Below are positions 43,845-53,372 of a stretch of 64,000 bases of DNA, piece after piece. This stretch comes from Blepharisma stoltei ATCC 30299 (lineage: Eukaryota; Protista; Ciliophora). The position numbers and the translations under genes are program-made. The notes under the pieces were generated by a model. That model ran no database searches and was not told the DNA's origin. It saw only the letters and a list, made by a program, of their open reading frames with translations. Within the stretch, counting starts at the first letter, position 1, and each line of letters begins with the position of its first letter. The DNA is taken from NCBI GenBank assembly GCA_965603825.1, contig CBFDEM010000057.1, forward strand, positions 620,001-684,000, in the 5' to 3' direction.

Positions 43845-44450
43845 ATGGCAAGAAGAGATTAGTAACTTATATACAGCGACTTCTTGTTTAAATTAGTCTT
43901 AGTCGGAGATTCCGGGGTCGGAAAATCTTGCTTGCTATTGCGTTTTGCAGATGATACTTTTTCGGAGTCATATATAAGCACAATAGGGGTGGATTTTAGA
44001 TTCAAAACTTTTACGATTGACAATAAGCTGGTCAAGCTTCAAATTTGGGATACTGCTGGCCAAGAAAGATTTAGAACTATAACTAGTGCTTACTATAGAG
44101 GCGCTGACGCTATTTTGATTGTTTTTGATAAGACGAACAAGGAAAGCCTTGATCATATAAAAGACTGGGTTGAAGAAATTAATAAATATTCTGAAGGGTC
44201 AGTCAGAGTATTGCTGGGGAATAAATGCGATAGAAATGATAAAGTTGAAGTAAGCGAAGAAATGGGGCAAAAGTATGCTGAAATGTATGGTATGATGTAT
44301 GTTGAAACTAGTGCGTTAAGCGCACATCATGTAAGCGAAGCTTTTTTTATGGCAACAAGGGAGCTTGTACAGAAAAAAGAGAAAAAGACACCGAAAGGAA
44401 AGAAACTTGATGACTTGAAAAAAATTAGGAAAAAGTCGAAATGTTGTTAA
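43845..44450 (+). CDS. RAB1: Rab1/Ypt1-family GTPase, 196 aa; one 15-nt intron
   Basis: Spliced N-terminus MARRDY|DFLFKL; GDSGVGKS, YISTIGVDF, WDTAGQERFRTITSAYYRGA, NKCD, ETSA; C-terminal CC. Confidence 0.92.
43862..43876 (+). other. 15-nt intron GTAACTTATATACAG
   Basis: Removal recreates the conserved Rab1 YDFLFK; retention creates TAG. Confidence 0.94.
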
Positions 44451-48796: not shown

Positions 48797-49664
48797 AAAG
48801 ATGAAATTAGGATCATTAATTAAACCTGAGCTTAAAAAATTGGCTATTTAAATTGATGACGTATATTTTGATGATGTAATATGTAAGAATACCAGCTTAT
48901 TAATTGGGATTCTCATATCGATTTATAAATAAAATTTATTATTTATAAATAATTTTAGACCTTATGATAATCTTAAGAAAAAGTTTTTGAATTTGCTATT
49001 TATATACTTAGCCTGCTTAACAAAAATTTTATATTTTTAATAATAAAACTATTTTTTAAGTTTTTATCATTGAGAGCTTCTTAAAAAGGCCTACAATGCT
49101 TGATGATTACTAATCAACATCAATTCTAATTGAAGTGACAAAAAATTTCAACTCAAAAGCTTAATTATAAATATTGGTGAATATGCTGCCATTATTAAAT
49201 CATAAATGGTAGAAATATCGATATTTCGAAAAGATTAAGAAATATCCCAACAAATTATTTTGCATGCTTATTTTTAAATCATAATTTTTTATATTAGAAG
49301 GAAGAAAAGAGAATACTTATTCTAACCTTAAAAAATAAGAAACTAACTTTAAATTTTTTTAAATATATTAGTTTATATGAAAGCCAACCAAGGAGGATTT
49401 TTAATAAGCCAGACATCAATGGCTTGCACAAGCCAATATAAATTTTACTAAAAGAAAAGCGCTCATTTGTGGGATATTCATCGATAACACATATATTCTA
49501 GAGCTTTAGCAAGCTCAAAGAAATCTTTTGCTAATATCCTTGCAAAATTAGCTAAATAATATTAATTTGCATATTGCATTTAATTTTTGTTTCCAAAAAT
49601 TATAATGGAATTATTAACAATATGAATGCATTTTTACAAAAATTCCCTTAATTGAGCATTTAAT

Positions 49665-52205
49665 TTATTGATTGCTATTTAAAGAGGTTTTTAGTTGCTT
49701 TTCCATATGATGTAAAGCTTTTTCAGATATAACTTGGAACACTTTTTCGATATTTGTTGCTTCCTTAGCAGAGACTTCAAATAAATTCATTTCTCCATCG
49801 CCCTTGCACCACTCAAGAGCATCATCATAGCTTACATCTCTATGCTCTACATCAATTTTATTTCCTATAATAATAAATGGAAACTCCTCAGGAAACTCAG
49901 GTTTTGCGACATTTAAAAACTCTTCTTTTCAGTCTTTGATGGCTTGAAAGCTTTTATCAGAATTTATATCATATACAATTACACAGCAGTCTGTGTCTCT
50001 ATAAAATGCAAGCTCAAAACTTAAATATCTTTGGTGGCCAGGGATATCCCAAATATTCAAGCAAATAGAATTACCATCTAAAACTACATCTTTTATAAAT
50101 AATTCAGCATAATCTGTTTCATCTTGATCTAGGTCGAATTTCTTATTTATGTATTGATTTAAAAGCGAAGTTTTTCCTACTTTAGAATTTCCCAAGACTA
50201 AAATTTTAAGATTAGTTGTGTTGGCTTTTTTAGATTGTTTTTTTTTGATAGGCTTGCTTTTGAGCTTATAGCTTAGAAAATTATATAATGGAATCTCTAC
50301 AAATAAAGCAAATGGTACTGCAAAAATATAAACAATTCCAATAAGAGCAATGGAATATCAGTAAATATTTAGCTTCTGTAAGTAGAGAGAGGATTTTTGG
50401 CTTTTCATAATAATATCAATAATATTTAGATGAATTAAATAGGCACAATAAGTAAGTTTACCTAAAGGAGCCCACATTTGAAGCGACATTGGATACCTGA
50501 AATAAGTAAAATGGCCTAAAATCAAAGGCAACCCCATTAAGCTTATTCCAGTAGCATTTACCACTTTACAACTAGCAATATATGCTACATTTTGGCCTTG
50601 GGTCCAATTATCAAATTGATAATCATCATCTTTGTACGCAGAATATTGTATATCAATTATAAAAGTTCATAAAAATAGCCCAAACAGCACAGCTCCTCAT
50701 CTTATATATCTATTTTCAAAATATTTAATTATTTGTTCAGCAATCCTGTCTCTTTTCTGATAATTGCATTTTGTATAATAAATAAAAGCCCCACCGATCC
50801 CAAAAGCATAAGAAGGGACTCTGCAATATGGCTTTGAAAAATAATAATCAAAATAATCATGATAATTTTCTGCTAAAACAACGACATTAAGATTGTAATG
50901 TGATGCAATTATTGCTGCAGAAGTCACTCCAATTGCACTTAAAACACTTATAAATAACCATGCGATTTTATATGATTTTTTATAAATTCATACAATAGGA
51001 AGGGTAATGATAAAAAATTGCATTTCACAAGCCAAATAATAGCCATTTGACAAGCACCGAGTGAATTTGAAATCAGGCACAAAATTATTCACATAAATTG
51101 CATTTGACCATCAATAATCATTGCATTCATCATTTATTTCATTTCCTTGGTATCATAAAGGGCCTTGTCCAATGTATTTTTGTAATGACCAAAAAAATAA
51201 AGTAGCTGATAAAAAAATTGGTGCTTTAAGAGCATATTCAGAAAAAATTGCTTTAAAATAATATTTATGATCCCCTTCGCAGAAGTAAAGTAGAAATAAA
51301 GTAAATGTGAACCCTGAAATCCAAAATAGCGTATCAAGAGAATACAGCCCTGAGAAAAATACTATATTTTCGTCTTTATCAAGCAGCTGTTCAAGCTTCA
51401 TTACATTTGCAAGCACTGAATTATTAAAAAAATAATAAGCCACTGTAGCTACAATCAGTCAGCATACACTAACTCATCTAACAAAATCAAAAAATTTAAG
51501 ATTTTCGTCATCATTTGCCTTCATTAGTATTTTAGCATTTCTTTTCGCTGAAAAATTCAATAAAAATTCCCTTATCCTTGATTTTTTTCTTTTTACATTT
51601 ATTGGCGATTTATCATTTAAATCTCTTAGTTCGCTGTATTCTGACCCAAGCTCATTTTCTTCTTCTTTAACACTTTGGATGATATCAATAGCTGTCCCAG
51701 TAATTCCAATTAATCCAATAAAAACACAAAATAAAATCATAAAGGTTGCCCCTGCTGTGATTTTAAAATGCTTTTCAACATATGTGTGAGGAAAGTGAAT
51801 AACTGCAGAAGTATTTTTTATTGTTTCTCTTAAAGTCCCAGGCAAAAATAAAGACTGCTTTATTGGGTCTGTATTAAAAAAGGAATTAATTGCATCATTA
51901 ATGATTTCTATATAGTTCTCCTCTGAGCATATAGAAGGGCCACATACTGAATAACCCACAAATGGGTGCCTTATGATTTCTATGAGAGTGTATTTTGTGT
52001 CTGATAAAGCTTCACAATCATCATATCTTCCTAAATCGTTGAGACTTTTTCCAGTATATGTGAACATTTTGGAATATCTGTCAGGATCAGTTTCAAAGGA
52101 ATTTGGGGCACTTTTAAATACCAGGGCTAATTCTTGAAAGCATAATGTAACATTTGAAGCTCAAGCAATGGATAAGCTGATAAAGATTTTACATAGAATT
52201 TTCAT
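49665..52205 (-). CDS. Fusion protein: signal peptide, NRF domain, acyltransferase-3 (NRF-6/OAC-like) multi-TM domain and Rab7-like GTPase, 846 aa
   Basis: ATG 52205 to TAA 49665-49667 with no TAA or TAG in between; five ORF-track fragments are joined by TGA only. NRF motif GKSLNDLGRYDDC..CGPSICS; AT3 motifs DTLFWISG, GQGPLW, CNDYWWSNAIYVNNF, YLACEMQFF, KPYCR, PLGKLTYCAYLIH, FVEIP; then GNSKVGKTS, WDIPG, FYRDTDCCVIVYD, FPFIIIGNKID, FEVSAK. Confidence 0.9.
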
Positions 52206-52331
52206 TCAAATTATTGTAAAACCAAAGAAGCCACATTTTTACTACAATTATTTAATTTACCAATGATTTTAATCTATTTAGCAAAGAAAGCATTAAGTTA
52301 AATATAATAGAGCAATGTTTTAATATAAAAA

Positions 52332-53372
52332 TTATTGAAAACTTGCTTTTATTAAAGTAATCATCATTTGTCTTCTATATGTATCGATTAAATCCTTGGT
52401 ATTGCAGAGCTGTTTCCCAATTGCAAGAGATTCTGCAATGTTGCATATAACAACTCCGCTGTCAACACCGCTTCCTCTAAAGCAATCAGCTCCTTTGTAG
52501 CGATACTCTGGAATATGATCAGTAGTTAATTTCTGAGCTCTTATGGCTCTGTGAACAAATTTATTAATTACTTTAGTAAAAATATCAGTGTCTGTTGCAT
52601 CTGTAAAAGGGTCAAAATATGTAACTGTATTCAAATTCATGTTCACCAATAAAAGCGACCAATAAGTTGTATGTATTGGAAACATCAATAAGTCGTAGTT
52701 TAAAATATTGATTTTCGGCTGAATAATCGATCTCCCTTTTAGAATTAACGCCTCTGAAAACTGTGAGTCAGCAATCATCACTTTGGCAGCTAATTTGTTA
52801 TAGTTTAATAAGTTACGATTCATTTGTACAATAATAGACATATAACAGTTAAGTATTTCTTCTGTTAGGCCTAAACCTTCTCTGAAGACCAAAAACTTGC
52901 CTGAGAGAATCGTCCTATGGCCTATTTTAAAAACTTTTCTGTCCTCTCCAAACCTTGGATCGAAAACCCATATGAAAGCTTCCTTGATTTTGTCTAGCTC
53001 AAAGGGATTTATTTTGTTTGAAGGCTCCAATTCTCTTAATCTTTTAATAATTTCATACTCAAGAGCTGAATATTGAGGCTCATCATGCACTGTTGGAGTT
53101 GGGGAGCTAAAAAGTATCTCTGCACAACAGCCCAGCTTAAATTTTGATAAGTTTTCTTGTGTTAGCACACTTTGTGCTATGTCTTTTTGTAAAAAAGTAG
53201 GGAGAAGGTTTGATCTTAAATTTTGTTTACTAAAAATCCGTGTATATGCTGATGAATGGCATGGAAGAGACATCATGGCATCACTATTGGAATCGACCAA
53301 AGATCTCACTGAGGCATCATTGTCGCTTGCATCACCCTTGGAATACCATTTCATTGCGGATACTGAACGCAT
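52332..53372 (-). CDS. Ulp1/SENP (peptidase C48)-fold protein with degenerate catalytic residues, 346 aa
   Basis: LTEEILNCYMSII, DLLMFPIHTTYWSLLLVN..VTYFDPF, GVDSGVVIC, YRRQM follow C48 order; HW is YW and DCG is DSG. Confidence 0.8.
   Translation of the reverse strand: MRSVSAMKWYSKGDASDNDASVRSLVDSNSDAMMSLPCHSSAYTRIFSKQNLRSNLLPTFLQKDIAQSVLTQENLSKFKLGCCAEILFSSPTPTVHDEPQYSALEYEIIKRLRELEPSNKINPFELDKIKEAFIWVFDPRFGEDRKVFKIGHRTILSGKFLVFREGLGLTEEILNCYMSIIVQMNRNLLNYNKLAAKVMIADSQFSEALILKGRSIIQPKINILNYDLLMFPIHTTYWSLLLVNMNLNTVTYFDPFTDATDTDIFTKVINKFVHRAIRAQKLTTDHIPEYRYKGADCFRGSGVDSGVVICNIAESLAIGKQLCNTKDLIDTYRRQMMITLIKASFQ

Follow-up and report, generated by a model that had tools for sequence, protein, structure and literature searches.

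A Rab7-derived GTPase domain joined to an acyltransferase-3-type membrane protein in the ciliate Blepharisma stoltei

I describe here a gene of Blepharisma stoltei ATCC 30299 that joins, in one open frame of 846 codons, a polytopic membrane protein of the acyltransferase-3 (AT3) family to a small GTPase domain (G domain) of Rab7 descent. It lies on the reverse strand of a 64,000-nucleotide stretch of DNA, hereafter the window, which corresponds to positions 620001–684000 of contig 57 (CBFDEM010000057.1) in assembly GCA_965603825.1; the genome scanned comprised 41.46 Mb in 64 contigs. This is a genuine, intronless, transcribed and constrained fusion gene. The G domain keeps all of its nucleotide-binding motifs and has lost the catalytic Gln, a P-loop Gly, the switch signatures and the prenylation Cys, and the membrane half has lost the catalytic residues of its family. 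The best overall explanation is probably that the protein is a permanently membrane-anchored, hydrolysis-impaired Rab7-like module carried by a pseudo-acyltransferase.

One gene, read through the junction

The frame runs from position 52205 to 49665, ends in TAA and contains neither TAA nor TAG, only ten in-frame TGA codons (codons 15, 244, 249, 351, 365, 406, 503, 513, 616 and 759). Each of the remaining five frames across this interval contains 31–54 TAA or TAG codons, and at the given base composition an open frame of such length is expected by chance with a probability of ∼4e-24. The somatic genome of this strain has been described as 41 Mbp in size and 66% AT, with UGA coding for Trp and introns of 15–16 nt (PMC9942806); the present assembly fits this description in size, AT content and use of TGA. 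This code is visible inside the fusion gene itself, since TGA codons 249 and 365 align with Trp residues invariant among AT3 relatives, and TGA codon 759 with the invariant Trp of Rab7.

The uninterrupted frame had been noticed in an earlier model-made reading of the DNA (hereafter the sequence-only reading), and translation with UGA as Trp bears it out: the product is identical to P0001, an unnamed 846-residue model already present in NCBI nr and in UniRef, where it is the sole member of its 90% cluster and has precomputed Pfam domains. P0001 was retrieved by an exhaustive search with a 142-residue piece that takes in the last helix and the linker as well as two thirds of the GTPase, and the genome's own annotation carries the same model. 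The motifs quoted in that reading were all located at the places given for them (GNSKVGKTS at 672–680, WDIPGH at 719–724, GNKID at 781–785, EVSAK, the linker at 646–665, R-x10-T at 243–254 and SEYALKAP at 322–329), but the number of pieces into which standard-code gene callers would split the gene is 11 rather than five.

Contigs of four public runs, all from one study, were aligned to positions 49300–52600. Their depth is zero at 49300–49632 in all four runs and again at ∼52232–52317, and picks up once more with the 3′ end of the adjacent gene, whose stop is at 52332; since the flanks are silent on both sides, the runs are taken to be RNA. Published RNA-seq of this species mixed ATCC 30299 with the heterozygous strain HT-IV (PMC9942806). 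Two ∼1-kb contigs (49647–50666 and 49656–50666) bridge the junction of the two halves with hundreds of bases on either side, and are assigned to another allele or strain because they carry seven substitutions in the linker. A reference-allele contig (49734–50265) traverses the run of ten A (A10, coding strand, 50238–50247) that lies inside the Lys-rich linker. No gap, splice joint or loose end was seen in the contigs over the fusion gene, and contigs of two alleles cross the A10 run, in the region of 50200–50360 for which the sequence-only reading had asked for spanning reads, with zero gaps. Nor is there an in-frame Met between codon 601, which lies inside a membrane helix, and the G domain, or any stop between the halves.

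Contigs and reference differ at 39 sites, 30 of which are synonymous and nine not (p <= 2e-9, the chance expectation for synonymous change being 21–30%). The excess is present in the AT3 half (19 synonymous, 5 non-synonymous; p <= 1e-6), in the linker and G domain together (11 and 4; p <= 5e-4) and in the G domain alone (7 and 3; p <= 0.01). The AT3 core (residues 237–627) has seven synonymous differences and no non-synonymous one, and four of the five linker differences are synonymous in the fusion frame. Because synonymous changes are in excess in both halves, the whole frame is read as protein and is under purifying selection.

In the second allele (runs X1 and X2), the A10 run is interrupted by two synonymous AAA-to-AAG changes, its length being unchanged.

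An AT3 membrane protein with eroded catalytic motifs

Pfam assigns residues 237–627 of P0001 to Acyl_transf_3 (PF01757) with 33.8 bits (cut-off 31), covering model positions 2–320 of 326. A six-frame search of the genome with the same profile returned 17 places, among which the fusion gene is the weakest full-length match, with 30.3 bits (31.2 when the neighbouring pieces are included); most AT3 paralogues score 63–94 bits. When the seven pieces between TGA codons were submitted to Pfam individually, Ras alone matched, the AT3 pieces being too short to match. Eleven AT3 paralogues of the same genome, of 638–686 residues when translated with UGA as Trp, align with the fusion protein all the way from signal peptide to final helix. 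The assignment of the membrane core to the AT3 family, made in the sequence-only reading, is thus upheld by a Pfam score above the cut-off and by the paralogue alignment.

Both the AlphaFold2 (AF2) model and the hydropathy scan support ten helices in the AT3 core. A further helix (TM0) follows the N-terminal domain and is itself followed by a charged cytosolic loop extending to codon 236, so that the count of transmembrane (TM) helices, first put at about ten, becomes 11. The fusion protein is integral to the membrane and its N-terminal domain is lumenal; the 11 helices then place the C terminus in the cytosol, on the side of the positively charged tail, and the G domain would face the cytosol.

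The identity of the N-terminal domain can be narrowed to NRF-like, which is as far as the evidence goes. Residues G52, G59, Y61, C64, C88, P90 and C93 are shared without exception by the relatives, one of which is an animal protein with a Pfam NRF match, and profile-profile alignment with hhalign gave a weak match (60%, E 8e-5) over 48 columns. The Atlas model of the fusion protein superposes on a cluster combining NRF and AT3 (TM-scores 0.65/0.69), and by features as well as structure the nearest Atlas clusters are of the NRF-6/OACYL type. The Pfam NRF profile (PF20146), however, did not match the fusion protein even at E 10; it also matched nowhere else in the genome, a search in which the controls were equally silent and which is hence uninformative. 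The NRF domain proposed from sequence is supported by its position, Cys pattern, weak profile match and structural likeness, and misses every Pfam threshold.

Two motifs bear on the catalytic state of the core. In the bacterial enzyme OafA, the TM1 His and both Arg of the RxxR motif are each essential, mutants retaining 0.07–0.33% of activity: H25A leaves 0.33%, and R69A and R72A abolish activity (PMC7448272). The TM1 His is present in 11/11 paralogues and in the relatives P0151–P0154, and all of these also keep HRxxRxxP after TM2. The fusion protein has Thr254 in place of this His, and E323 and L326 in place of the two Arg, in agreement with the erosion reported in the sequence-only reading. 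The structural motifs of the AT3 fold (FFxxSG in TM2, Gly in TM6 and Tyr in the bent TM9; PMC12423673) are retained and invariant with the relatives, as LFWISG at 293–298, G469 and Y589. On these alignments the loss of residues for acyl transfer is selective, the structural motifs having been spared, and it predicts that acyl groups are not transferred from acyl-CoA. Because the structural motifs are retained and the residues essential in OafA are replaced, the AT3 fold is preserved and its chemistry very probably gone.

A Rab7-derived G domain with an altered switch

Residues 667–830 match Ras in Pfam with an E value of 8.2e-41. In a sequence search of the PDB, the G domain scored 184 bits with Rab7, its best match, ahead of Rab9 and then Ypt7, and no more than 91 bits with any other Rab; Foldseek likewise ranked Rab7 first (TM-scores 0.82–0.87); identity to Rab7/Ypt7 is 41–47%. 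Eight Rab7 sequences, three of them paralogues encoded in this genome and five from databases, were aligned with the domain. The motifs GxxxxGKT (G672..G677-K-T), the switch-I Thr (T697), DxxG (D720..G723), NKID (N782–D785) and SAK (from S812) are all retained, as are the Rab7-typical FYRxxDCCV and FPF motifs. The Rab7-like GTPase with G1, G4 and G5 motifs that was initially proposed is borne out by the Pfam, PDB, fold and alignment results.

The switch regions depart from this pattern. WDTAGQ is found in 8/8 of the compared Rab7 sequences, three of them from the same genome, and WDTAGQE reads WDIPGHQ in the fusion protein, with His724 at the position of the catalytic Gln. Elsewhere, TIGADF is changed to DYAELF, RFQSLG to RYLSFE and YRGAD to YRDTD; relative to the same alignment, WDTAGQERFQSLG is changed to WDIPGHQRYLSFE. 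The Gln-to-His replacement in G3 and the diverged switch I, both reported beforehand, hold against all eight Rab7 sequences. K-Ras Q61H and H-Ras G13D are among the fold matches that Foldseek found for the G domain.

The C-terminus is equally atypical. The last Cys of the protein, C800, belongs to the conserved Rab7 ‘WC’, none follows it, and the hypervariable tail is absent; with a chain ending in NSNQ, the earlier observation that there is no Cys prenylation motif is confirmed. The canonical Rab7 paralogues of the same genome keep WDTAGQ and TIGADF, and end in CC or CCK.

A tree of G domains was computed after excision of the residues encoded by a 15-nt intron in six paralogues, with X placed at the split codon. 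The fused G domain has a branch of 1.99 in this tree, against a median of 0.65.

The intron itself was a side observation. In five canonical Rab7 paralogues (L014–L018, at C21:335582, C60:467888, C46:480265, C5:639458 and C35:724065) the same spot of the P-loop, between GDS and VGKT, holds a 15-nt intron in which TAA or TAG occurs in frame. A sixth (L021, C4:286433), whose match starts only at VGKT, likely has it too, and it is absent from L019, L020, L022 and the fused G domain.

Paralogues and distribution

The 11 AT3 paralogues and two foreign relatives stop ∼20–30 residues past the last helix, the paralogues on a Lys-rich tail. The homologous tail in the fusion protein runs directly into the G domain. 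No second fusion was found in the genome, where no other AT3 place lies near any G-domain match.

An exhaustive search with the G domain across 1.84 billion representative proteins found both domains combined in P0001 alone. Searches that saturate or are of more limited reach agree: a word-indexed search with the G half returned, among proteins of 465–1480 residues, only the protein itself; one with the AT3 half returned seven relatives, none with Ras; and a search with an alignment as query gave three matches and no second fusion. A scan of JGI metagenomes found no relative, no Atlas cluster of at least 50 members holds PF01757 and PF00071 together, and literature searches found no paper describing this architecture. 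The sequence-only reading knew of no characterized protein of this kind, and none emerged from the databases searched; with the identical model as the sole protein found to combine both domains, the architecture is not already common. Given the reach of these searches, it is the rarity of the fusion that is shown, not its uniqueness.

The membrane half is sister to P0151 (36% identity, support 0.96), a protein in which the His and RxxR are intact. The coding sequence of P0151 terminates in TAG with a WD40 gene next in line, and Trp is coded only by TGG in the organism it comes from. Neither the fusion nor the catalytic losses are shared by P0151, the membrane part's closest foreign relative, and both therefore look specific to the present lineage.

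Three observations are recorded separately. NRF-6-like AT3 genes occur in tandem in this genome, four on contig 55 (C55:430931–439525; L003, L004, L005 and L007) and two pairs at C34:35096–38859 and C3:522465–526964, with the His and RxxR kept in all. The other long G-domain matches were considered as AT3 fusions and rejected: they are tandem multi-Ras proteins (P0002, P0003, P0004, P0021, P0087 and P0121; 570–790 residues, three or four Ras-family domains), which may be either genuine proteins with several G domains or the product of concatenating gene models. Finally, run X5, a mud metagenome RNA-seq, contains ∼5% of the sampled 31-mers of 49665–52205, which may point to the presence in that mud of the same organism or of one very closely related to it.

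Feature coordinates and genomic surroundings

The features of the fusion gene are collected in Table 1. Downstream of it, the ∼870 bases between 48797 and 49664 contain no open frame of 100 codons under UGA=Trp and include the 49300–49632 interval of zero depth in the four runs; this gap is long for a genome described with short intergenic regions. A second Ras/Rab-family match, at 43887–44165 (+) of the window (C57:663887–664165), is found on the opposite strand at a distance of 5.5 kb; it sits in a 194-residue open frame and has 31% identity to the fused G domain.

Table 1. Features of the fusion gene, in window coordinates.
Feature	Position	Strand	Basis
Minimal transcript (contig extent); 5′ UTR at least 26 nt, 3′ UTR at least 18 nt	49647..52231	-	contigs of four runs
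Complete CDS, 846 codons plus TAA, UGA = Trp, intronless	49665..52205	-	identical to P0001; contigs without splice joints
Predicted signal peptide, codons 1–17, hydrophobic stretch ending IAWA	52155..52205	-	hydropathy scan; aligns with N-terminal hydrophobic stretch of 11/11 paralogues; cleavage site inferred
NRF-like lumenal/extracellular Cys-containing domain, codons 18–150	51756..52154	-	conserved residues; hhalign
Extra membrane helix TM0, ∼codons 152–178	51672..51752	-	hydropathy peak 2.44 at 155–173; helix 151–194 in AF2 model
Acyl_transf_3 10-helix core, codons 237–627	50325..51497	-	Pfam PF01757; six-frame genome search; colinear with paralogues
TM1 motif R243-x10-T254, family-invariant His replaced by Thr	51444..51479	-	alignments
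Eroded RxxR, SEYALKAP for HRYLRxxP of relatives, both Arg lost (E323, L326)	51219..51242	-	alignments
Lys-rich linker, codons 646–666, homologous to short cytosolic tail ending the paralogues	50208..50270	-	alignment
Rab7-derived G domain, codons 667–830	49716..50207	-	Pfam Ras; PDB sequence search; Foldseek
P-loop GNSKVGKTS, GxxxxGK[ST] kept, Lys675 for Rab7 Gly	50166..50192	-	alignment; pLDDT <50 at 674–677
G3/switch II WDIPGH, DxxG kept, catalytic Gln replaced by His724	50034..50051	-	alignment
Short C-terminal tail, codons 831–846, no Cys, no prenylation motif	49668..49715	-	translation; ends NSNQ

Discussion

The reading that I favour, and hold to be somewhat better than an even bet, follows the order of the parts along the chain. 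A predicted signal peptide is followed by a lumenal NRF-like domain, one helix, a cytosolic loop, the AT3 core, the Lys-rich tail and the G domain, and the polytopic pseudo-acyltransferase would take the place of the geranylgeranyl anchor. Such a G domain would undergo neither extraction by GDI nor delivery by REP, and would remain permanently on one membrane. It would presumably still bind guanine nucleotide, and because His724 and Lys675 (at the position of Ras residue 13) resemble GTPase-deficient Ras variants, GTP would be bound and probably hydrolysed poorly. The product would be a resident, largely constitutive Rab7-like platform rather than a cycling switch, on an endolysosomal or phagosomal-type membrane; such a location is weakly suggested by the Rab7 descent. 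The receptor, transporter or GTP-switch roles and the late-endosome or food-vacuole location put forward in the sequence-only reading are conjectural.

Each half has close counterparts. Proteins of the NRF-6/OACYL/Drop-dead type have the same order of signal peptide, Cys-containing N-terminal domain, one helix, cytosolic loop and 10-helix AT3 core, and the fusion protein is colinear with its 11 paralogues and with animal NRF-6-like proteins. It differs from the NRF-6/OACYL relatives in lacking the TM1 His, the RxxR Arg and a Pfam NRF match, and in possessing ∼200 extra C-terminal residues that form the GTPase, which none of these relatives has. Rab7/Ypt7 provides the best matches to the G domain in both sequence and fold, by a wide margin, but here the G domain is covalently part of a polytopic protein, with which no REP/GDI cycle would be possible.

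Other departures from the usual mode of Rab attachment are known. Plant ARA6/RabF1 and Plasmodium Rab5b are Rab-family G domains without a C-terminal Cys motif; they are attached by N-terminal fatty acylation, and are peripheral and reversibly bound, whereas the fused G domain is part of an integral protein predicted to have 11 helices. In FeoB, a G domain is coupled to a polytopic transporter within one polypeptide, and SRP receptor beta and Miro have single-helix anchors. Unlike that of FeoB, the G domain described here is C-terminal and of Rab7 descent, and homology to FeoB was considered and rejected, the only trace being a sub-threshold FeoB_N match (E 0.084) and the membrane part being AT3. 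GTPase-deficient small G proteins include the K-Ras Q61H mutant and atypical Rho-family members of the Rnd/RhoE type; the fused domain is like them in that the catalytic Gln is replaced by His and Ras position 13, in the P-loop, is taken by a bulky residue, and impaired hydrolysis is inferred from this likeness.

Several points weigh against the anchored-module reading. The AT3 Pfam score barely clears its cut-off, and residues 566–660 are poorly modelled by AF2. The RNA nature of the four runs is a guess drawn from their silent flanks, and contigs neither establish that a single mRNA runs the whole length nor rule out a (minor) internal poly(A) site. The long branch of the G domain prevents its placement inside Rab7 from being fixed in the tree, and its diverged switch regions argue against binding of the canonical Rab7 effectors, so that the ‘Rab7-like platform’ may be wrong in this detail.

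That last point can also be turned towards a different function. By analogy with FeoB, the G domain may dock on the cytosolic mouth of an AT3-derived pore and govern whether a lipid or acyl-type ligand is bound or let through. Switch regions unlike those of every Rab7 compared are what would be expected if the membrane domain of the same protein had taken over from Rab effectors as the partner; moreover, the AT3 core is strongly constrained (seven synonymous against zero non-synonymous differences) although its catalytic residues are gone, and FWISG, G469 and Y589 are intact. In AT3 proteins, a pore for acyl-CoA opens on the cytosolic side (PMC12423673). Against such gating, the linker region is modelled at low confidence, the linker itself is flexible, rich in Lys and homologous to the tails that end freely in the paralogues, and there is no homology to FeoB. 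I regard this function as the main, though tentative, alternative, perhaps one chance in several. Its fullest form, in which the Rab7-derived domain would act as a nucleotide-controlled lid and the whole protein as a eukaryotic counterpart of FeoB, carrying or sensing a lipid or acyl-CoA-like ligand under GTP gating in a digestive or lysosome-related compartment, is more doubtful still; in that form a GTPase of trafficking would have been remade into a regulator of the pore within its own chain.

A Rab7 copy might instead have come to lie in frame behind a decaying AT3 paralogue by evolutionary accident, the protein being made but consisting of two relics on their way to being lost. The fusion is a singleton in one genome, both of its halves lack catalytic residues, and both are the most diverged of their families here (30–34 bits against 63–94 for AT3; the 1.99 branch for the G domain). 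Such a history is hard to reconcile with an intact frame of 846 codons, transcription in four samples, a frame kept by both alleles across the A10 run, or the selective retention of nucleotide-binding and AT3 structural motifs, and the strong synonymous excess in both halves is a signal of selection because of which a neutral relic is unlikely. That there is not one gene at all, but two neighbouring ones, or two frames falsely joined by misassembly of the A-rich linker, is very unlikely: A10 runs are a typical place for length errors and a single mRNA is beyond what contigs can prove, but contigs of two alleles traverse the run with zero gaps, there is no stop and no Met from which a separate GTPase could start, the linker differences are mostly synonymous (4/5) in the fusion frame, and the genome annotation has the same 846-residue model.

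What the comparisons offer is, in all, a pair of known families in a new domain combination, seen in a single lineage, and is to be taken as a lead and not as a result. Rab GTPases are defined by reversible, prenyl-dependent attachment to membranes. A Rab7 descendant built into an integral membrane protein would be a natural experiment, a Rab that is unable to leave its membrane, and the loss of the catalytic Gln suggests that the G domain may also be unable to switch itself off. The membrane half provides a clear case of a transmembrane acyltransferase that is without its catalytic residues and still under selection, which is relevant to the molecular role of the NRF-6/OACYL proteins.

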